DNA from: Pristiophorus japonicus
Taxonomy: Eukaryota
Length of the DNA: 64,000 nucleotides
Direction of reading: 5' to 3'
NCBI RefSeq assembly: GCF_044704955.1
Contig: NC_091992.1
Span: 111,848,001-111,912,000, forward strand
The notes under the pieces are model-generated. The model was given only the letters and a program-made list of their open reading frames with translations, ran no database searches and had not been told where the DNA came from. Shown here in pieces: positions 11,458 to 60,867 of this stretch. How positions within the stretch are numbered: position 1 is the first letter of the stretch; every line of letters starts with the position of its first letter. The translations under genes were made by a program, and so were the position numbers.

Positions 11458-14400
11458 AGTGCCGCTTCATACAGTATGTATGCAGAGGGTGTGTGAAGAC
11501 ACGGCATCTTCAGCGGAGCAAGCGAGCTGTGACACACCACGTGGATGATGATCAATCCAGCATGGATCTGGCGATGCAGCCCGACGCATTTAAGAGCTCC
11601 GAGGAGGAAGTGTATAGCGTACATGCGTTCCTAACAAAGAGCCAACCGATAATGATGGAGGTAAAAGTTGGAATTAGACACGGGTGAGAGTCAATCGATA
11701 ATGAGCCAGAGAACTTTCGAAAAGCTGTGGGAGACCAAGGCAGAGAGACCCAAGCTGAGTCCAATAAATGCGAAGTTGCGTACCTATGCCAAAGAGCTCA
11801 TACCAGTGATCGGTCGTGCAGCAGTAAAAGTGTCGTACGAAGGAGCGGTTCATGATCTACCATTAAGGATTATCCCGGGCAACGTCCCATCGTTATTCAG
11901 CAGGAGTTGGCTCGAGAAAATAAAATGGAAATGGTACAATATCAAAGCTTTGTCATCAGCGGATGATGATTTGTGTGCTCAAGTGCTGAGCAAATTTCCC
12001 TCACTGTTTGATTGGGGAATTGGCAGCTTCAAGGGAGCCATGGTGCAGATTCACCTAGGCCCAGGCGCAAGGGCCATCCATCACAAAGCCAGGGCAGTCC
12101 GGCACATGGTGAGAGAAAAGGTCGAGCTCGAATTGGACAGGCTATAACGTGAGGGGGTCATCTCACCGGTTGAATTTAATGAATGGGCCAGTCCAATTGT
12201 TCCGGTGTTAAAGGGCGACGGCACGGTCAGGATTTGTGGACACTACAAGGTCACGATCAACCAAGTTTCGAAACAAGATCAGTACCCGCTACCGAAAGCT
12301 GATGACCTGTTTGCAACGCTAGCCGGGGGAAAATCGTTCACCAAATTGGATCCAACATCGGCCTACATGACCTGGTTGAATCATCAAAGAAACTTACGTA
12401 CATCAACACACACAAAGGACTGTTTATTTACAACAGGTGTCCTTTTGGCATTCGTTCAGCGACAGCCATATTTCAGAGAAACATGGAGAGCCTATTGAAA
12501 TCCGTCCCCAGTACCGTGATATTCCAAGACGACATCCTAGTCACAGGTAGTGACATCGCCGAGCACCTGCACAATCTGGAAGAGGTTCTGCGTCGTCTGG
12601 ACAAAGTGGGACTCAGGCTGAAACATTCAAAGTGCTTTTGCATGGCACCAGAGTTCGAATTCCTTGGACAAAAGATTGCTGCAGACGGAATCAGGCCTAC
12701 AGATACGAAAACAGAGGCCATCAAAAATGCGCCCAGACCCCAGAATGTGACGGAGCTGCATTCGTTCCTGGGTCTTCTCAACTACTTCGGTAACTTCTTA
12801 CCCAAATTGAGCATAGTATTAGAGCCTTTGCACAAACTGCTCAGGAAAGGAGATGACTGGGTGTGGGGTGAACTTCAAGACAGAGCCTTTGTGAAGGCTA
12901 GAAATCTGTTGTGTTCCCACAAGCTACTGATACTGTATGACCCATGCAAGTGTCTAGTTTTGACCTGTGATGCGTCGTCCTATGGGGTCGGCTGCGTACT
13001 CCAGCAAACCAATGAGTCAGGCAAACTACAACCAGTTGCATATGCATCTCGAAGCCTGTCCAAGGCGGAAAGAGCTTACGGCATGGTAGAGAAAGAGGCT
13101 TTAGCATGTCTTTATGGGGTAAATAAAATGCACCAGTGCCTGTTTGGGCTTCACTTCGAGCTGGAAACCGATCACAAGCCGTTTATATCGTTGTTCTCGG
13201 AACATAAAGGTATCAATACCAACGCCTCGTCCCACATCCAGAGGTGGGCGCTGACATTATCTGCCTATGATTATGTCATTCGCCATAGACCAGGCACCGA
13301 CAACTGCGCTGATGCATTGAGCCGGTTACCGTTGTCCACACCGGAGGTGGAAACGCCAATGCCCGCAGAGCTACTTATGGTCATGGATGCCTTTGAGAGT
13401 GAAGGGTCACCTGCCACGGCTCAACAAGTTAAGACCTGGACCAACCAGGATCCGACCCTATCGGTTGTAAAACATTGTGTTCTTAACGGGGACTGGTCGA
13501 CCATCTCCAAGGAAATGGGTGATGAAACCAAACCGTACAGCCGTCGCAAAGATGAGCTTTCCATCTAGTCCGACTGTTTACTGTGGGGTAATTGTGTTGT
13601 AATGCCCAAGAAAGGCAGAGCGAGATTTGTATGGGAGGTTCATAGTACGCATCCCGGTATTGTCATGATGAAGGCCATCGCCAGGTCCCATGTTTGGTGG
13701 TCTGGCATTGACTTGGACTTAGAGTCATGTGTGCATCAGTGCAGCACTTGCATGCAGTTAAGCAATGCCCCAAAGGAAGCTCCGCTCAGTCTGTGGTCAT
13801 GGCCATCCAAACCATGGTCTAGAATGCACATTGACTTTGCGGGCTCCTTCCTCGGTAAAATGTTTTTTGTGGTAGTGGATGTGTACTCCAAATGAATAGA
13901 ATGCGTGATCATGTCATCCGGCACTTCCACTGCCACCATTGAGAACCTGAGAGCCATGTTTGCCACACATGGTCTGCCAGACATCGTTGTCAGCGACAAC
14001 GGATCATGTTTCACGAGCCTGGAGTTTCAAGAGTTCATGAAATGCAACGGCATAAAACACGTAAGGTCAGCCACGTTCAAACCCACGTCCAATGGTCAAG
14101 CGGAGCGGGCAGTTCAAACCATCAAGCAGAGCCTGAAATGCAGTCACTGTTCCTTTCAGGCACGCCTGTCACACATACTGCTCAGTTACAGGACAAGGCC
14201 ACACATGCTCACCGGGGTCCCGCCTGCGGAACTACTGATGGAGAGGCCTCAAAACCAGGCTCTCTCTAGTTCATCCTGACATTAACGATCATGTCGAAAC
14301 CCGATGTCAACACCAGCAGTGGTATCACGACCGCGCCGCCGTGTCACGTGACATATCTGTAAACGACCCAGTGTGTGTACTTAACCATGGTCAAGGGCCC

Positions 14401-15377: not shown

Positions 15378-15826
15378 CTAAAGACAGTGAGAAATTCTTT
15401 GTTTGAACATCCAGCTCTCAATGACAGTTAAAATTAATTGATGCCAAAAAAGAAATCATTTTATTGTAATACAATGTCTTGAACAAGTTCTGCTAATTAA
15501 AATTCCTGCAGTATTTCTAAAATACAATTATTGAACTAGGATACTGATCCCCGGAGTAGCATTACAATATGGCTGCACAATGCAGTAATGGAATGTAAAG
15601 CTGGGAGCACTTGCACAGGGCTGTGCTATAAAATAAATCAAATGTGTTACTGGGATAGACTTCTGGAAGAAACATCAAAAATAACTTTACTTATTTGTTT
15701 GCCTTCGAAAGAAAGGAGATGGTAACATCTTCGACTAACCCAGGGACACTGTTCCTCCAAACCTCAATTGTAAAATTCTCATCCTTGTTTTCAAACTCCT
15801 CGATGGCCTCACCCCACCCTATCTCT

Positions 15827-17290
15827 GGGCTCAAAATTGGCCAGGAGTTGCTCCGTTTTTTTTGGAGCAACGTGATTTTTCTGGAGTATCTTAAAAATCC
15901 ACATTTTGCACATTTAATTTGCGCCAGTGTAAGTGAGTTCATAAGATTTTTTTTTCAAAAGGGGCGTTACCAGCCACCTATGCTTGTTTTGGCCATTTAG
16001 GCCACTTTGGACAACTAATAGTTACTCCAAACTAACTTAGGCCAGCATATGTGGCCACTTCTGAACACCCTTGCAGAGAGTTAAGAAATTAGCGCAGGTA
16101 GGTACATCGGAGACCAGCACAACTTAATGACTTGACTAAAGAATGTGAATAGGATCAAACAGCTATACAGGACATCATATGACAAACTTCGCAAAGTTAA
16201 TTTACTATACAACAGAAGCATTCGTGGAAGCTTAAACTACAAAAATAAAAGAAGGGTAGCTAATGTAAACAACTATTTGTTTGCAATGATTATACTGGGC
16301 CAAAATTGAGCCTATATTATCTAAATAAAGTCTACTTCAATAAATAAGATATTCTCTCAGTGTTCCTCTGTCACTTATGTTCTTCTTTCACAATAGCACC
16401 AGGTGAATAGGCTTGACAAATAGTCACTACTATTCACAAGAGACAAAATATATTGATATAATTTTTTCAAAATATCCAAAAGTCCAGGAAAATGACAAGC
16501 CTTTCAGAAAGTTCAAAAATAGTTACAGTGCATAAAATGTCAAACCTGAGGTCGATCGCACCGGGAGGCCACTCGGCTAGGGCTAGGGGCGGGCATCAGG
16601 TCCCACACACACAGCGGCTGCAGCACGCTGTAAGCAGATTTCTTCTCTCCTCCTCTCTTCTTCCACATAACGCCACCGATGACCAGAGCAATCAGGGCGA
16701 CGGCAGCAATCACAATTCCAACAATCAAACCGAGATTTGTTCCCTTTGGAGATCCTGGAGTCACTCGGAACGTCCCATCCCAGTCTCAGTTCTTCACTCC
16801 TGTATTGGCACTCTGCTCATACTGACAGTAACAGGTGGCTCCATCCTCGGGTTCGATCTCAGCCCATCTCGTCAGCTGGTAGGTTCCGTCGTGGTTGGGC
16901 AGAATGCCACTGGATTCCGTGTCCATGATCGGCTCGCGATTTCTTACGAGGGTGACTTCGATATCACGAGAGTAAAAGCCCGTGTCGAAGCAGGAGAGTT
17001 GGGTCGGTTTAATATTTGGCCACTCAGCCTGGGATGGGGGCGGGACACACACAGAGATGCTGGGGGCGAGGAGCTACTGTGCATGCGCGCACACGCCAAT
17101 GCACATGTGCAGACGTCCCGGCACTATTTTCAGTGTGGGACACTGGCTCTGCCCCCGGCTCGACTGGCCACGCTGTGCGAAGACCCGGGAGAGGCCGGAC
17201 AGTGGCCAAAGTCAGGACGTCTTTTTTCGTCGAAAAGCTGCGCAACTCGGGTGAGTGTGCCAAAAATCGTCATGGGCCAATTTTGAGCCC
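15827..17290. mobile_element. Non-autonomous PIF/Harbinger-type TIR element carrying captured cargo (Pack-TIR-like)
   Basis: Perfect 16-bp TIR GGGCTCAAAATTGGCC (15827-15842) and GGCCAATTTTGAGCCC (17275-17290); 3-bp TSD TCT; subterminal similarity to 19063-19844; TIR related to 55290-57999. Confidence 0.9.
16618..17017 (-). pseudogene. Intron-less MHC class I heavy-chain fragment (alpha3 Ig-C1, connecting peptide, TM, cytoplasmic start)
   Basis: One frame: NIKPTQLSCFDTGFYSRDIEVTLVRN...SSGILPNHDGTYQLTRW...CYCQYEQSANTGVKN*DWDGTFRVTPGSPKGTNLGLIVGIVIAAVALIALVIGGVMWKKRGGEKKSAYSVLQ. Class I alpha3 motifs, a TM segment, a basic stop-transfer and a cytoplasmic Tyr. Single TGA at 16788-16786. Confidence 0.88.
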
Positions 17291-18988
17291 TCTGTAACTT
17301 CCTCCAGCCCGCTCCTCCAATTCTGGCCTCTTGCACATCCCCTATATTAATCACTCCACCATTGGCAGCTGTCTTTTCAGCTGCCTAGGCCCTAAATTCT
17401 GGAGTTCCCTCCCTACATCGCTCTCTCTCTCTCTCTACCTCTACCTCTATCTCTCTTTCCTCCTTTAAGACGCTCCTTAAAACCTGCCTCTTTTGGTCAT
17501 CTGCCCCAATATCTCCTTGTGGCTTGGGGTCAAATTTTGTTTCATAATGCTCCTGTGAAGCACCTTGGGACATTTTACTACATTAAAGACGCTATATATG
17601 CAAGTTGATGTTGTTAATATCCCGTATTTATTTTTAACAAAATGCAAAATATGACCTGGAGAGATTGATGGTTTTTGAAAAATAATCCAAGAAGATAAAT
17701 TCTAAATCCTAATTCCATTTTGAGTCTCCACATTTAACAGGATCCTGGGACAGCTTGACAATTAACAAAAAGACAAACAGTTAATAAAACATAACCTGAT
17801 GTTTTATTTTGAGTTAGATTAAGCAGCGTGATCCGAGCAATGATATTTTTCTGTAAAAATGCACTCATTTTTCAAAATGTCAGGCTTCTGTAAACAAGCA
17901 GCATGTATATTTTCTCTCACTTCCTCTCACATAAGCCATGCCTTATGGCTTTTTTTCAAATCAATTAGTTGCGCATAACAGATATAAATTAATTAGAAAA
18001 AGTCTTCATTTGGATCTTCAATACTGCAGTTTATTCATTTATTTAGGCCTGTCATTTGTGTAATTGGAGTATATGAAGACTTTTTGAAAGCCCATTATTG
18101 CTACATTATCAGACCCATCAATGGAACACAAAAGTCACTGGCTGTCCATAGTCTTGCCTGCCTGAACTTGGTGTGTATGGTATTTTGTCATCTAGCAGTT
18201 TGCACTCAGGTGATCATGTGGGAGGAAAAGCTGTTGTGCAGCTTCCTTCAACATCTCTTGTCTCCATGTCTAACCTCAGCTGGCATCAGTGGCCCAAATT
18301 CTCTAACTCGCTGTTAGATCTCTTAATTTCCAATGAAATACGAACTCCGATTGTAATTTTAATGTAACTTTATTCTGGCAGCAGCAACAAGCTCTTGGCT
18401 TTAAGCCAGGCCTTTGTCCTTCTGAGACCACATGGCCAAAATGGCTGTACTTATACCTGGTTCAATTTACAGAAAAGAACACGCCTTCTTTGACCTTATT
18501 GGCTCAATTGATAGTCTGTTAACCTTTTAATTGGCTCACTACCAAAGGTCCTAAAATGTCAAGTTGATTGATGACTTAATGCAATGTGGTCTGTGTTTTT
18601 TCAAAACTGCAGCCAGGCTGCAGAGCTTGAATTCTCTATCGCCCATCAAAAGAGAAGCCTTGGTAGTCAGGGGAGAAAGGTGAAAGGAAAACAAATTGAA
18701 TTTGATTATTCATGAACCAAAATTAGAAAAAAAAACACATTTAATTTGACCCTGATTTGAGAACCCAACCAAATCATAGCATCCCCCAGTATTCTCCTGA
18801 AAGCCCTAACCAATGCTGGGTTACAATTCCACAGGGGCTGGAAACCCTCCATCAGCTTACCCCATTCTTCATACATGAGCCGCAGATAGCGAATGGGCAG
18901 AGTCACCATATCCAAGCCTGGTCATGTCTTTGCCCGACATGCGCACACTTTCTCAGACAGGTCACTGGGCAGCATTTCAGATGGAGCC

Positions 18989-19062: not shown

Positions 19063-19844
19063 GGGCTCAAATTTCCCCAACACCTTATTCTGGCGCCCGC
19101 ACTAAAGGTGAAAGGGGGCATTCCCAGACACTTACGCCAGTTTTGGCCATTTATGCCACTTTGGACAGCAAAAACTTACTCCAAATCCACTTAGGTCAGC
19201 GTATGCGGCCAGCTGTGAAAAAGCAGCGCACATTCAGCAGACATTAGGGCAGGGATAGGGGAGGGAAGGGAACTGGAGAGGACCTCAACAACCAAGCAGC
19301 AAACATTAAGGAAAAGCTCAAACCAATAAAATACAATTAATAAAAGAAGCAAATCCTACCCTAGCTTTAAAGTCTGTCTGGAAAGGCTGCGGACCACCTG
19401 TGTGTGAGGCCATTTGGCCTGGGATAGGGGAGGCAAGATGCACTGGAGAAGTGCGAGCTCGTGGACCGGAAAAGTTGCAGCTGCTGGATCTGCGTGTTTC
19501 ATCACAGGGGCAGGGGGGGGGTGGCGGTGAGCCCGCCGAGCGACCGGAGATGCGATGCTCTTTAAAAATGGTATAGAGTGCCAAGTTTTCTCTCTCTCCT
19601 GCGCATGCTCACACGTCGGGGCTGGTACCACTGCGTATGCGCGAAGGTGCCGGCACTGTATTCGGCGACGGCGTTTGGGTCCGCCCCCCCCCCCCCACTT
19701 CACCATCAACACCACGCCAGGACTCCGGGGACTGTACACAGCGGCCAGGATGGGGCGAGTTTTTCCCGGCACTGTTTCCAGCGCGCAAAGTTGGCGCGCT
19801 GGAGGCCAGTGCGCCAACAAAACTGCTTGGGGAAAATCTAGCCC
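19063..19844. mobile_element. Non-autonomous Harbinger-type element (sister of 15827-17290, without MHC cargo)
   Basis: Imperfect TIR GGGCTCAAATTTCCCC and GGGGAAAATCTAGCCC; 19115-19215 aligns with 15961-16063; no TSD. Confidence 0.8.
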
Positions 19845-20764
19845 GTAGTGTGCACCCTAGCCTGGGGTACGGAGGACAATTGCTGAACAATTACTGCTGC
19901 CCCAGGTGATATCGGCTAACTCGGCACAGGCCCAGAATCAAGCCTACTGTACCATTATGATGGCTCAGAACTGCACTGGCATTTACCAACCATGCCATGG
20001 GGGAAAAGTTCCCCAACCTGGTTTTTAAAGTATGTGGTTTTGTATATAGTCTTCGTGACCCCAGTCGCTACATTCAACTATACACTAAAGAAAACTTCTG
20101 ACACCGTGCAGGATTCCCCCTGCATTGCCTGAGTTTATTGCAAGTGTTACTAATCTTAACCGTCATGAAGGGAAGCATTAACTCTCAGCTGTCCTAATCT
20201 AATTGGCATGTCCCATTTTTGAAGGCCAACTTTAGCCTTGTCTTATTCATCATACTTTAGATCAAGCTTCCCAGAGTTTTAAATACCTTCCAAGCCTCAG
20301 ACTGTCAGCCGCAAGATGGCCGTTTTAAGAATCAATTCACGCCGTTTTAATATTCCAAGTTGTGACACATGGCAACGTGCCACTGAATTTAGTCGTTTGT
20401 CCCAGATTTTCAGGTTGAGAGGTACCAACTAGATACCCGGCATCTCCTCGTAGAGAAGGGAGGCAGAAAAGAATGCCGCTTCAGATTGCTCTCATACATC
20501 TGTTTGTGGGCAGCTCATGTGTGAGCACCATTAGCAGAGCCTGTCAGCAACGTGCCCAGCCATCCTGTAAAGCCATCACTTACTGTACAGCAATATGTTG
20601 TTAAATAAATAGACAAAGTATTTTTACTATGCGATAAGTCACATGCCCACACAGCCATAAGACATGTACAAACATGCCCAGACATAAAATATTGCAATAA
20701 AGCTAGAAAAAGTATTGCTCAGTCACTACCAGCAATAATAACAGCTAAACCTGGCTGATCCACT

Positions 20765-32199: not shown

Positions 32200-35100
32200 A
32201 TAAGAACATAAGAAATAGGAGCAGGAGTAGGCCGTACAGCCCCTTGAGCCTGCTCCGCCATTTAATAAGATCATGGCTGATCTGATCATGGACTCCGCTC
32301 CACTTCCCCGCCCGCTCCCCATAACCCCTTATCGTTTACGAAACTGTCTATTTCTGTCTTAAATTTATTTTATGTCCCAGCTTGAACAGCTCTCTGAGGC
32401 AGCGAATTCCACAGATTCACAACCCTCAGAGAAGAAATTTCTCCTCATCTCAGTTCTAAATAGGCGGCCCCTATTCTAAGATCATGCCCTCTAGTTCTAG
32501 TCTCCCCCATCAGTGGAAACATCCTCTCTGCATCCACCTTGTCAAGCCCACTCATAATCTTATATGTTTCGAGAAGATCACCTCTCATTCTTCTGAATTC
32601 CAATGATTGGAGGTCCAACCTACTCAATCTTTCCTCATAAGTCATCCCCAGAATCAACCTAGTGAACCTTCTCTGAACTGCCTCCAAAGCAAGCATATCC
32701 TTTTGTAAATATGGAAACCAAAACTGCACACAGTATTCCAGGTGTGGCCTCACCAATACCTGTATAACTGTAGCAAGACTTCCCTGCTTTTATACTCCAT
32801 CCCCTGTGCAATAAAGGCCAAGATTCCATTGGCCTTCCTGATCACTTGCTGTACCTGCATATTATCCTTCTGTGTTTCATGCACAAGTACCCCCAGGTCC
32901 CGCCTTACTGCAGCATTTTGCAATCTTTCTCCATTTAAATAATAACTTGCTCTTTGATTGTTTTTCTGCCAAAGTGCATGACCTCACACTTTCCAACATT
33001 ATATTCCATCCGCCAAATTTTTGCCCACTCACTTAGCCTGTCTCTGTCCTTTTGCAGCTTTTTTTGTGTACTCCTCACACATTGCTTTTCCTCCCATCTT
33101 TGGATCGTCAGCAAACTTGGCTACGTTACACTCAGTCCCTTCTTCCAAGTCGTTAATATAGATTGTAAATAGCACTGATTCCTGTGGCACCCCACTCGTT
33201 ACTGGTTGCCAACCAGTGAATGAACCATTTATCCTGACTCTCTGTTCCCTGTTAGCTAGCCAATCCCCCATCCATGCTAATATATTACCCCCAACCCCGT
33301 GAACTTTTAAAAACATAGAAACATAGAAAATAGGTGCAGGAGTAGGGCATTCGGCCCTTCAAACCTGCACCGCCATTCAATGAATTCATGGCTGAACATG
33401 CAACTTCAGGACCCTATTCCTGCTTTCTCACTATACCCCTTGATCCCCCGAGTAGTAAGGACTACATCTAACTCCTTTTTGAATATATTTAGTGAATTGG
33501 CCTCACCAACTTCCTGTGGTAGAGAATTCCACAGGTTCACCACTCTCTGGCTGAAGAATTTTCTCCTCATCTCGGTCCTAAATGGCTTATCCCTTATCCT
33601 TAGACTGTGACCCCTGGTTCTGGACTTCCCCAACATTGGGAACATTCTTAATGCATCTAACCTGTCTAAACCCCTGAGAATTTTAAACGTTTCAATGCGA
33701 TCCCCTCTCATTCTTCTGAACTCCAGTGAATACAAGCCCAGTTGATCCAGTCTTTCTTGATATGTCAGTCCCGCCATCCCGGGAATCAGTCTGGTGAACC
33801 TTCACTGCACTCCCTCAATAGCAAGAATGACCTTCTTCAAGTTAGGAGACCAAAACTGTACGCAATACTCCAGGTGTGGCCTCACCAAGGCCCTGTACAA
33901 CTGTAGCAACACCTCCCTGCCTCTGTACTCAAATCCCCTCGCTATGAAGGCCAACGTGCCATTTGTTTTCTTAACCGCCTGCTGTACCTGCAAGCCAACC
34001 TTCAATGACTGATGTACCATGACACCCAGGTCTCGTTGCACCTCCCCTTTTCCTAATCTGTCACCATTCAGATAATAGTCTGTCTCTCTGTTTCTACCAC
34101 CAAAGTGGATAACCTCACATTTATCCACATTAAACTTCATCTGCCATGCATTTGCCCACTCACCTAACCTATCCAAGTCACTCTGCAGCCTCATAGCATC
34201 CTCCTCGCAGCTCATACTGCCACCCAACTTAGTGTCATCCGCAAATTTGGAGATACTACATTTAATCCCCTCATCTAAATCATTAATGTACAATGTAAAC
34301 AGCTGGGGCCCCAGCACAGAACCTTGCGGTACCCCACTAGTCATTGCCTGCCATTCTGAAAAGTACCCATTTACTCCTACTCTTTGCTTCCTGTCTGCCA
34401 ACCAGTTCTCAATACACATCAGCACACTACCCCCAATCCCATGTGCTTTAACTTTGCACATTAATCTCTTGTGTGGGACCTTGTCGAAAGCCTTCTGAAA
34501 GTCCAAATACACCACATCAACTGGTTCTCCCTTGTCCACTCTACTGGAAACATCCTCAAAAAATTCCAGAAGATTTGTCAAGCATGATTTCCCTTTCACA
34601 AATCTATGCTGACTTGGACCCATCATGTCCCCTCTTTTCAAATGCGCTGCTATGACATCCTTAATAATTGATTCCATCATTTTACCCACTACCGATGTCA
34701 GGCTGACCGGTCTATAATTCTGTTTTCTCTCTCCCTCCTTTTTTTAAAAAGTGGGGTTACATTGGATCAGTTCCTATGGAGTGAAGGGTAGCCAGAGTCT
34801 ATGGAATGTTGGAAAATGACTGTCAATGCATCCGTTATTTCCAAGGCCACCTCCTTAAGTACTCTGGGATGCAGACCATCAGGCCCTGGGAATTTATCGG
34901 CCTTCAATCCCATCAATTTCCCCAACACAATTTCCCGACTAATAAGGATTTCCCTCAGTTCCTCCTTCTTACTAGACCCTCTGACCCCTTTTATATCCGG
35001 AAGGTTGTTTGTGTCCTCCTTAGTGAATACCGAACCAAAGTACTTGTTCAATTGGTCTGCCATTTCTTTGTTCCCCGTTATGACTTCCCCTGATTCTGAC

Positions 35101-58097: not shown

Positions 58098-60867
58098 CAG
58101 GTTGAACCTTCCTTATCCAGGATTCCCTTAGCCGGCACCACCCCTCATCCTGCACCATTCCCGCCACCGGGTGGCGCTTGCGCAGAACTCCGACACGAAC
58201 ATATTAAACAAATTGAAGTCGTTCCTCGCTGCTGACTCCCACAAAGAAATAAGGGACGTGTGCAATAAAGGTACAGCAGTAATCATGGGCGACTTTAATC
58301 TACATATTGATTGGGCTAACCTAACTGGTAGCAATGCGGTGGAGGAGGATTTCCTGGAGTGTATTAGGGATGGTTTTCTAGACCAATATGTCGAGGAACC
58401 AACCAGGGAGCTGGCCATCCTAGACTGGGTGATGTGTAATGAGAAAGGACTAATTAGCAATCTTAGTGTGCGAGGCCCCTTGGGGAGGAGTGACCATAAT
58501 ATGGTAGAATTCCTTATTAAGATGGAGGGTGACAAAGTTAATTCGGAAACTAGGGTCCTGAACTTAAGGAAAGGTAATTTCGACGGTATGAGGAGTGAAT
58601 TGGCTAGAATAGACTGGCAAAGGATACTCAAAGGGTTTATGGTGGATAAGCAGTGGCAAACATTTAAAGATCACATGGATGAACTTCAGCAATTGTGCAT
58701 CCCTGTCTGGAGTAAAAATAAAACTGGGAAGGTGGCTCAACCAAGGCTAAGAAAGGAAATTAAGTATAGTGTTAAAGCCAAAGAAGAGGCATATAAATTG
58801 GCTAGAAAAAGCAACAAACCTGAGGACTGGGAGAAATTTAGAATTCACCAGAGGAGGACTAAGGGTTTAATTAGGAGGGGGAAAATAGAGTATGAGAGGA
58901 AGCTTGCAGGGAATATAAAAACTCACTGCAAAAGCTTCTATAAATATGTGAAGAGAAAAAGATTAGTGAAGACAAATGTAGGTCCCTTGCAGTCAGATTC
59001 AGATGAATTTATAATGGGGAACAAAGAAATGAATCAATACTTCAGTTCTGTCTTCACGAAGGAAGATACAAATAACCTTCAGAATGTACTAGGGGATAGT
59101 GGGTCTAGTGAGAAGGAGGAACTGAAGGATATCCTTATTAGGCTGGAAATTGTGTTAGGGAAATTGATGGGATTGAAGGCCGATAAATCCCCGGAGCCTG
59201 ATAGTCTGCATCCCAGAGTACTCGAGGAAGTGGCCCTAGAAATAGTGGATGCATTGGTGATCATTTTCCAACAGTCTATCAACTCTGGATCAGTCCCTAT
59301 GGACTGGAGGGTAGCTAATGTAACACCACTTTTTAAAAAAGGAGGGAGAGAGAAAACGGGTAATTCTAGACCAGTTAGCCTGACATCAGTAGTGGGGAAA
59401 ATGTTGGAATCAATCATTAAGGGCTAAATAGCAGCACATTTGGAAAGCAGTGACAGGATCGGACCAAGTCAGCATGGATTTATGAAAGGGAAATCATGCT
59501 CGACGAATCTTCTGGAATTTTTTGAGGATGTAACTAGCAGAGTGGACAAGGGTGAACCAATGGATGTGGTGTATTTGGACTTTCAAAAGGCTTTTGACAA
59601 GGTCCCGCACAAGAGATTGGTGTGCAAAATCAAAGCACGTGGTATTGGGGGTAATATACTGACGTGGATAGGGAACTGGTTGGCAGACAGGAAGCAGAGA
59701 GTCGGGATAAACGGGTCCTTTTCAGAATGGCAGGCAGTGACTAATGGAGTGCCGTAGGGCTTAGTGCTGGGACCCCAGCTCTTTACAATGTACATTAACA
59801 ATTTAGATGAAGGAATAGAGTGTAATATCTCCAAGTTTGCGGATGACACTAAACTGGGTGGCGGTGTGAGCTGAGAGGAGGACGCCAAGAGGCTGCAGGG
59901 TGACTTGGACAGGTTGGGTGAGTGGGCAAATACATGGCAGATGCAGTATAATGTGGATAAATGTGAGGTTATCCATTTTGGGGGCAAAAACACGAAAGTA
60001 GATTATCTGAATGGCGGCAGACTAGGAAAAGGGGAGGTGCAACGAGACCTGGGTGTCATGGTTCATCGGTCACTGAAAGTGGGCACGCAGTAAAAAAAGG
60101 CAAATGGTATGTTGGCCTTCAAAGCTAGGGGATTTGAATATAGAAGCAGGGAGGTCTTAATGCAGCTATACAGGGCCTTAGTGAGGTCTCACCTGGAATA
60201 TTGTGTTCAGTTTTGGTCTCCTAGTCTGAAGGACGTTCTTGCTATAGAGGGAGTGCAGCGAAGGTTCACCAGACTGATTCCAGGGATGGCTGGGTTGTCA
60301 TATGAGGAGAGATTGGATAAACTGGGCCTTTATTCACTGGAGTTTAGAAGGATGAGAGGGGATCTCATAGAAACATATAAGATTCTGATGGGACTGGACA
60401 GGATAGATGTGGGAAGAATGTTCCCGATGTTGGGGAAGTCCAGAACCAGGGGACATAGTCTTAGGATAAGGGGTAGGCCATTTAGGACTGATATAAGGAG
60501 AAACTTCTTCACTCAGAGTTGTTAACCTGTGGAATTCCCTGCCACAGAGAATTGTTGATGCCAGTTCACTGGATATATTCAAGAGGGAGTTAGATGTGAC
60601 CCTTACAGTTAAGGGGATCAACGGGTATGGAGAGAAAGCAGGAAAGGGGTACTGAAGGAATGATCAGTCATGATCTTATTGAATGGCGGTGCAGGCTCAA
60701 AGGGCCGAATGACCTACTCCTGCACCTATTTTCTATGTTTCTATGTTTCTACCCCCTTGCTCAGTGCCTGTACCATCCAATTTAACTTAACCTCCCCTCA
60801 TCCGGCAAAATCCCTTATCCGGCACAGGCCAGGTCCGGAGGACGCCAGATAAGAGAGGTTCAACTTG
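58098..60867. mobile_element. Second Tigger-like MITE copy (opposite orientation) split by CR1
   Basis: TA-CAGGTTGAACC ... GGTTCAACTTG-TA; both halves match the reverse complement of 54591-54947. Confidence 0.85.
58241..60751 (+). mobile_element. CR1 LINE, 5'-truncated (partial endonuclease, RT, tail)
   Basis: [17 protein letters not shown] and FADD motifs; (TTTCTATG)n tail. Confidence 0.96.

Follow-up and report, generated by a model that had tools for sequence, protein, structure and literature searches.

The window analysed here is a stretch of 64,000 nucleotides of the Pristiophorus japonicus genome (contig NC_091992.1, positions 111,848,001 to 111,912,000 of the forward strand), and all positions below are counted from its first letter. 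It is repeat-rich and has no obvious host gene. Its retroelement reading frames include the RT/RNase H of an LTR element (12483-13565), an RVT_1 domain (33805-34689) and an endonuclease-RT (58171-59424). At 15827-17290 lies an element bounded by terminal inverted repeats (TIRs) that carries part of an MHC class I gene in its interior (Table 1). The original prediction, made from the letters of this DNA, described the element as 1464 bp long with perfect 16-bp TIRs, and this is borne out: GGGCTCAAAATTGGCC at 15827-15842 is complementary at 16 of 16 positions to 17275-17290. By arithmetic estimate, the chance expectation for a perfect inverted pair of 16-mers within about 2 kb is roughly 5e-4. 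A chance origin of the pair was considered and rejected in view of the empty site and of the huge size of the element's family, both described below.

The element interrupts a host repeat (15711-15832 and 17297-17418), an L2 fragment according to the original prediction, which is extremely abundant and interspersed and occurs in a second species, organism B, as well. In the window sequence, a 3-bp TCT adjoins both element ends. For the empty-site test, the two flanks were joined and compared with the rest of the window. The occupied locus reads CCCTATC-TCT(element)TCT-GTAAC, while the window has two copies of the host repeat without an interruption, which read CCCTATC-TCT/TTT-GTAATCTCC. Because the uninterrupted copies have a single TCT or TTT at this place, the insertion is clean and the flanking TCT pair is a real 3-bp target site duplication (TSD), in agreement with the earlier description.

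Table 1. Features of the class I-carrying element and of the second family copy (window positions)
Feature	Positions	Strand	Evidence
Left TSD copy, TCT	15824-15826	.	Single TCT/TTT in uninterrupted host-repeat copies
Left TIR, GGGCTCAAAATTGGCC	15827-15842	+	16/16 complementarity; >200 DNA contigs with diverse loose ends just before 15827
Left arm of non-autonomous element	15843-16566	+	Sequence comparison; contig depth and joints
Motif copy M1 (GGCCACTCGGCTAGGGCTAGGGGCGGG ... CACACACACAG)	16567-16613	+	Motif alignment
Backbone linker abutting cargo 3' end; also in cargo-free family copies	16614-16626	+	Joint 16627->17048
Cargo, start of cytoplasmic tail (GGEKKSAYS); homology stops within cytoplasmic exon 1	16627-16653	-	Protein homology
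Cargo, connecting peptide and TM segment (DGTFRVTPGSPKGTNLGLIVGIVIAAVALIALVIGGVMWKKR)	16654-16779	-	81-85% identity to P. japonicus class I proteins
Cargo, alpha3 (C1-set) without first ~13 residues; starts NIKPTQLSC	16780-17016	-	Pfam and protein homology
In-frame TGA at relatives' Arg codon	16786-16788	-	VKN*DWDG vs VKTRDWDG
Motif copy M2 (GGCCACTCAGCCTGGGATGGGGGCGGG ACACACACAG), direct repeat of M1	17018-17056	+	Motif alignment
Right arm	17057-17274	+	Weakly shared with 19628-19781; contig depth
Right TIR	17275-17290	-	Complementarity to left TIR
Right TSD copy, TCT	17291-17293	.	Uninterrupted host-repeat copies
Second, diverged family copy; no class I cargo	19063-19846	+	Sequence comparison, motif alignment

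The interior of the element is recognizable as class I by several kinds of comparison. The minus strand has a frame that is open between 17052 and 16789 and, after the TGA, again to 16543, so the claim of a single stop in one frame holds. The part upstream of the stop matches Pfam C1-set (E 4.7e-9, above the gathering score), and the best solved relatives are alpha3 domains of class I type, namely MR1, CD1 and PDB 6lup, which was deposited as 'MHC class I protein'. A HMMER scan of 1.84 billion representatives returned horn-shark class I proteins as the top single-domain matches (68-70% identity), and a second search, seeded with a horn-shark protein, recovered closer class I proteins from P. 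japonicus. One of these, P0163 (355 aa), is 79% identical to the cargo over alpha3 and 81% over the connecting peptide and transmembrane segment (CP/TM); for the P0158 cluster, a group of six near-identical P. japonicus proteins, the values are 73% and 85%. The domain order of the cargo, with a C1-set domain, a connecting peptide, a single TM segment and the start of a cytoplasmic tail, is the alpha3-CP-TM layout of a class I heavy chain. Homology extends from NIKPTQLSC to GGEKKSAYS, equivalent to P0163 codons ~209-338 (window 17016 down to 16627, 392 bp). The prediction had placed the cargo at 16618-17017 on the minus strand; its reading as alpha3, CP, TM and cytoplasmic start stands, but its left end was about 9 bp too far out. 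Protein homology and the aligned contigs place the cargo, including its right end, at 16627-17016/17018, with 16614-16626 belonging to the backbone. No poly(A) or poly(T) run adjoins either cargo end, as had been noted.

The gene fragment is incomplete and decayed. It comprises 130 of about 355 codons and is without alpha1, alpha2 and the first ~13 residues of alpha3. An intact class I frame is not present, given the TGA at 16786-16788 and the restriction to codons ~209-338, and residues that are conserved in class I proteins are altered, with SCLVTGFYP changed to SCFDTGFYS and ATYSC to ATCYC. Judged by its sequence, the cargo is a dead piece of a class I gene: both of its ends are truncated, a nonsense codon interrupts it once, and conserved residues have changed. 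It has in common with the classical-type shark class I genes (P. japonicus P0163 and the P0158 cluster, Heptranchias P0157, Squalus Q8HWH7) the CQYEQS end of alpha3, the DWDGTFRVTPGS connecting peptide and the IVGIVIAAVALIALVIG transmembrane segment, and differs from them in its 130 codons of ~355, its stop at the Arg codon and its altered conserved residues. When the 130 cargo codons were placed in a protein tree together with 16 class I proteins of sharks, the tree was a polytomy, so the cargo is placed within the CQYEQS/DWDGTF class I lineage at large and not beside any one member of it. The DNA and RNA contigs listed are 82-90% identical to the cargo. Over 16652-16758, a class I TM sequence of organism B shares 92% identity with the cargo. 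On the plus strand, an ATG-initiated reading frame of 264 aa (16492-17286) lies antisense to the whole cargo and continues through the right arm nearly as far as the right TIR. No Pfam family matches it, and it is probably an artefact of lying antisense to coding sequence.

Contigs from sequencing runs give a view of the element beyond this locus. Logan contigs of four runs were aligned to 15650-17450 at 80% likeness. Two of these, X3 and X1, are DNA runs from the organism itself, in which the unique left flank has a depth of about 14 and about 6, and these depths, like all Logan contig depths quoted here, are a rough guide only and not copy numbers. X5 is a small run of another sample, in which class I-like depth (3e4-1.7e5) dwarfs that of the element backbone, and for this reason we take it to be, probably, an RNA run. 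At 16706, all DNA-run contigs of the organism have G and nearly all of the depth in X5 has C, which is either a class I polymorphism between individuals or the mark of an expressed gene missing from the aligned DNA contigs.

In the organism's DNA runs, the summed depth of the left arm is 1e5 or more, against about 14 for the single-copy flank. The family backbone is essentially absent from organism B at 80% likeness, though the host repeat is shared, and together these observations indicate a family of huge size that, at 80% likeness at least, is confined to its lineage. Immediately outside the left TIR, over 200 contigs carry diverse loose ends, whose consensus is AT-rich and finishes in CAA at 0.38 agreement. 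The left arm is itself composite. Its segment 15957-16065 is 80% shared with the second family copy in the window, and the segment 16260-16564, which contains a TIR-like GGCCAAAATTGAGCCT at 16298-16313, belongs to a less abundant subfamily. Joints in the family contigs skip 16299-16551 in some cases and 16252-16437 in others, so the left arm holds subfamily-specific or nested segments. Class I sequence is rare in the family: bins within the cargo have depths of 300-900 against 6e4 in the adjoining backbone, so that about 1% or less of members have cargo-like sequence, and contigs with the joint 16627->17048 represent members that have no class I cargo.

The cargo-free second copy at 19063-19846 is informative about the sequences that flank the cargo. 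Its TIRs are GGGCTCAAATTTCCCC and GGGGAAAATCTAGCCC, and comparison with paralogous host repeats identified no matching TSD for it. In both family copies in the window, a motif that aligns as GGCCAYTyrGCCtGGGATAGGGGmGGG occurs twice in direct orientation. In the class I element, these copies, M1 (16567-16613) and M2 (17018-17056), bracket the cargo; in the second copy, they lie at 19242-19268 and 19411-19437, around an unrelated middle of ~142 bp. The few cargo-free joints skip M2, whereas the second copy has both motifs. M1 includes, at 16567-16578, the reverse complement of GGCCGAGTGGCC. Apart from the direct repeat, 16774-16790 and 17022-17038 form an inverted match of 17 nt at 88% (core CTGGGATGGG) between M2 and the alpha3/TM junction of the cargo, which brackets the alpha3 part with a potential stem; with an E of about 0.26 within the element, the match is marginal by chance. 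Such a match could be the homology that guided a template switch.

The motif pair bears directly on whether the cargo is an ordinary retrocopy, that is, a class I mRNA copied by a LINE and landed by chance in a resident MITE. The imperfect direct repeats of about 30-45 bp around the cargo can be read as a long TSD of such an event, yet the same pair occurs in the second family copy, where there is no class I cargo, and this speaks against a TSD unique to the class I capture. The cargo also has no poly(A) or LINE tail and stops inside cytoplasmic exon 1, so that the 3' sequence from which reverse transcription would have started is missing. We regard LINE-mediated retroposition as very unlikely.

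A second question is how the cargo came to be free of introns. Intron positions were taken from annotated isoforms of relatives in the horn shark and the sevengill shark (Heptranchias). Of the horn-shark isoforms, P0154 lacks exactly ARML...KRR and P0152 lacks GGEYKHSYSSANP, implying introns that follow ...ILDW, ...KRR and ...ANP; the Heptranchias isoforms part at KKR| and PAN|. The cargo is uninterrupted across both W|D (about 16780/16779) and KKR|GG (16654/16653). The absence of two canonical introns, as originally claimed, is thus supported by inference from the isoforms of relatives.

The accompanying claim, that the cargo was derived from cDNA or mRNA, does not follow from this absence. 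DNA-run contigs of class I sequence are contiguous over both intron sites. A single-copy X1 contig (1111 nt, depth 7.3) aligns to 16627-17018 with 61 differences, its alignment stops exactly at both cargo ends, and about 674 nt beyond, on one side, are unlike the element. Other DNA contigs, of 632-636 nt, extend beyond the W|D site by over 100 nt in both directions, and DNA contigs that align only over the cargo and continue into sequence unlike the element are 82-87% identical to it. Intron-free class I genomic DNA therefore exists outside the element family, and since it is present in the same genome, a DNA template suffices and capture of cDNA is not needed, an outcome that the original prediction itself had listed as its first ground for refutation. 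Our literature search on intronless shark class I genes found nothing relevant. Direct capture of class I mRNA or cDNA, by RNA-templated or RT-assisted repair of an excision gap with loss of the introns at capture, would explain why the cargo crosses two canonical intron positions, and its template would have been plentiful, with class I transcripts at very high summed depth in the probable RNA run X5. The protein tree, moreover, does not place the cargo within the annotated P. japonicus cluster of six copies. Against this stand the intron-free class I DNA outside the element in the DNA runs, which makes a DNA template available and simpler, and the cargo itself, which is 3'-truncated, lacks poly(A) and so bears no positive sign of an RNA intermediate. 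On this evidence we think capture from RNA rather unlikely.

The best overall explanation, to which we give a probability of roughly 0.6, is that the element is a member of a Pack-type MITE family, that its class I fragment was captured from intronless genomic DNA, and that it probably moved afterwards. A break or excision gap in an element would have been repaired by synthesis that switched template onto class I DNA, the donor being a class I copy in the genome that was retro-derived and had no introns. After 392 nt had been copied, synthesis would have returned to the element some 30-45 bp back. The loaded element would then, probably, have transposed, and the insertion into the host repeat would be one such event. 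We infer the repair mechanism, the use of a DNA rather than an RNA template and the mobilisation after capture; the DNA-template route is the most economical because intron-free class I DNA is found elsewhere in the genome.

Depths at individual letters within the cargo bear on this last step. The window's letters at 16668, 16910, 16938 and 16966 reach about 140-240 depth in the DNA runs, roughly 10-17 single-copy equivalents, and are absent from X5. Those at 16829-16852 have depths of 36-55 in DNA, and those at 16945, 16947 and 16985 have a depth of 14, which corresponds to a single copy. Such nesting is in keeping with a small set of cargo-like copies that are not expressed, although silent retro-pseudogenes could also produce it. 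The perfect TIRs and TSD lie beside a cargo that is 10-16% diverged, which suggests that the insertion is younger than the capture, and dispersal of the loaded element after capture is plausible. Alternatively, the capture may have taken place as proposed but in situ, after insertion into the host repeat, in which case the loaded element never moved and other class I-bearing elements are independent captures or segmental duplicates. Formation of animal Pack-TIRs independently of transposition has been described (PMC8277862), and none of the contigs listed bridges a cargo-backbone junction at another locus. The nested depths are nevertheless better suited to amplified dead copies, and an in-place capture sits uneasily with perfect TIRs and a TSD around a cargo whose divergence from all class I sequences sampled is 10-16%. 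We give capture in place a minor but appreciable chance.

As to its class, the element has TIRs and a TSD at a clean site, and its interior comes from a host gene and not from the transposon, since most family copies are without the cargo (about 1% of backbone depth; joint 16627->17048). On these features of its sequence, it is a Pack-type non-autonomous TIR DNA transposon, another case of a known kind. Cut-and-paste transposons of plants are well known to capture gene fragments. PIF/Harbinger elements usually have a TSD of TWA, and their autonomous partners encode a DDE_Tnp_4 transposase and a Myb-like ORF. A scan of the window's long ORFs found no transposase partner, the ORFs being those of retroelements. 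The element resembles PIF/Harbinger-derived (Tourist-like) MITEs in its 3-bp TSD, its short TIRs starting with GGG/GGC, its very high copy number and its lack of coding capacity, but differs from them in having TCT instead of the preferred TWA (TAA/TTA). The Harbinger label given to it originally is suggested only by the length of the TSD, and any membership in that superfamily is tentative, a matter of resemblance.

With the Pack-TIRs of animals and the Pack-MULE and Pack-TYPE elements of plants, the element has in common non-autonomous TIRs, a TSD, a host gene fragment and breakpoints inside the element, as well as the proposed origin by gap filling and template switching and the presence among them of some that became multicopy through later transposition. 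A survey of animal Pack-TIRs (Tan et al. 2021, Nat Commun 12:4280; PMC8277862) attributed them to microhomology-guided gap filling or template switching, independent of transposition, and counted single-copy and multicopy cases separately. The shark element differs from these in that its MHC class I cargo is intron-free and lies between two family-intrinsic motif copies. The same survey discarded intronless cargos of multi-exon parents, and one intron-free case in it is the ARF6 retrogene inside MER20 (PMC8277862). There, too, intron-free gene sequence lies within a TIR element and may be either a captured retrogene or the product of a separate retroposition. The mammalian retrogene is nearly complete, however, and the shark cargo is an internal piece that lacks both ends of the gene, a state that speaks against simple retroposition.

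A more far-reaching reading of the motif pair is that the MITE family has a preferred internal capture site at the duplicated GGCCACTCRGC...GGGGCGGG motif, that this site was filled repeatedly and sometimes from RNA, and that an element loaded with spliced class I sequence was amplified to ten or more copies. We hold this to be quite doubtful. If an RNA-fed capture site and an amplified class I element were real, the family would be a multicopy vertebrate Pack-TIR family with RNA-derived immune-gene cargo.

Under the reading we prefer, capture from intronless genomic DNA, the significance of the element is of a different kind. Nothing in the evidence requires a DNA transposon to have captured mRNA, and the element does not open a new route of mobility for immune genes. 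The original prediction had suggested a role in exon shuffling of MHC genes or in antisense small RNA production, for which we found nothing in support: the fragment is cut short on either side, contains a stop codon and no longer keeps all of its conserved residues, and the element makes no working immune gene. Because cargos without introns were filtered from the animal survey (PMC8277862), cases such as this one are under-described, and the shark copy provides a clean example with a proven empty site. Its main practical value is as a warning for annotation, since class I-like alpha3/TM matches in the P. japonicus genome can be transposon cargo.
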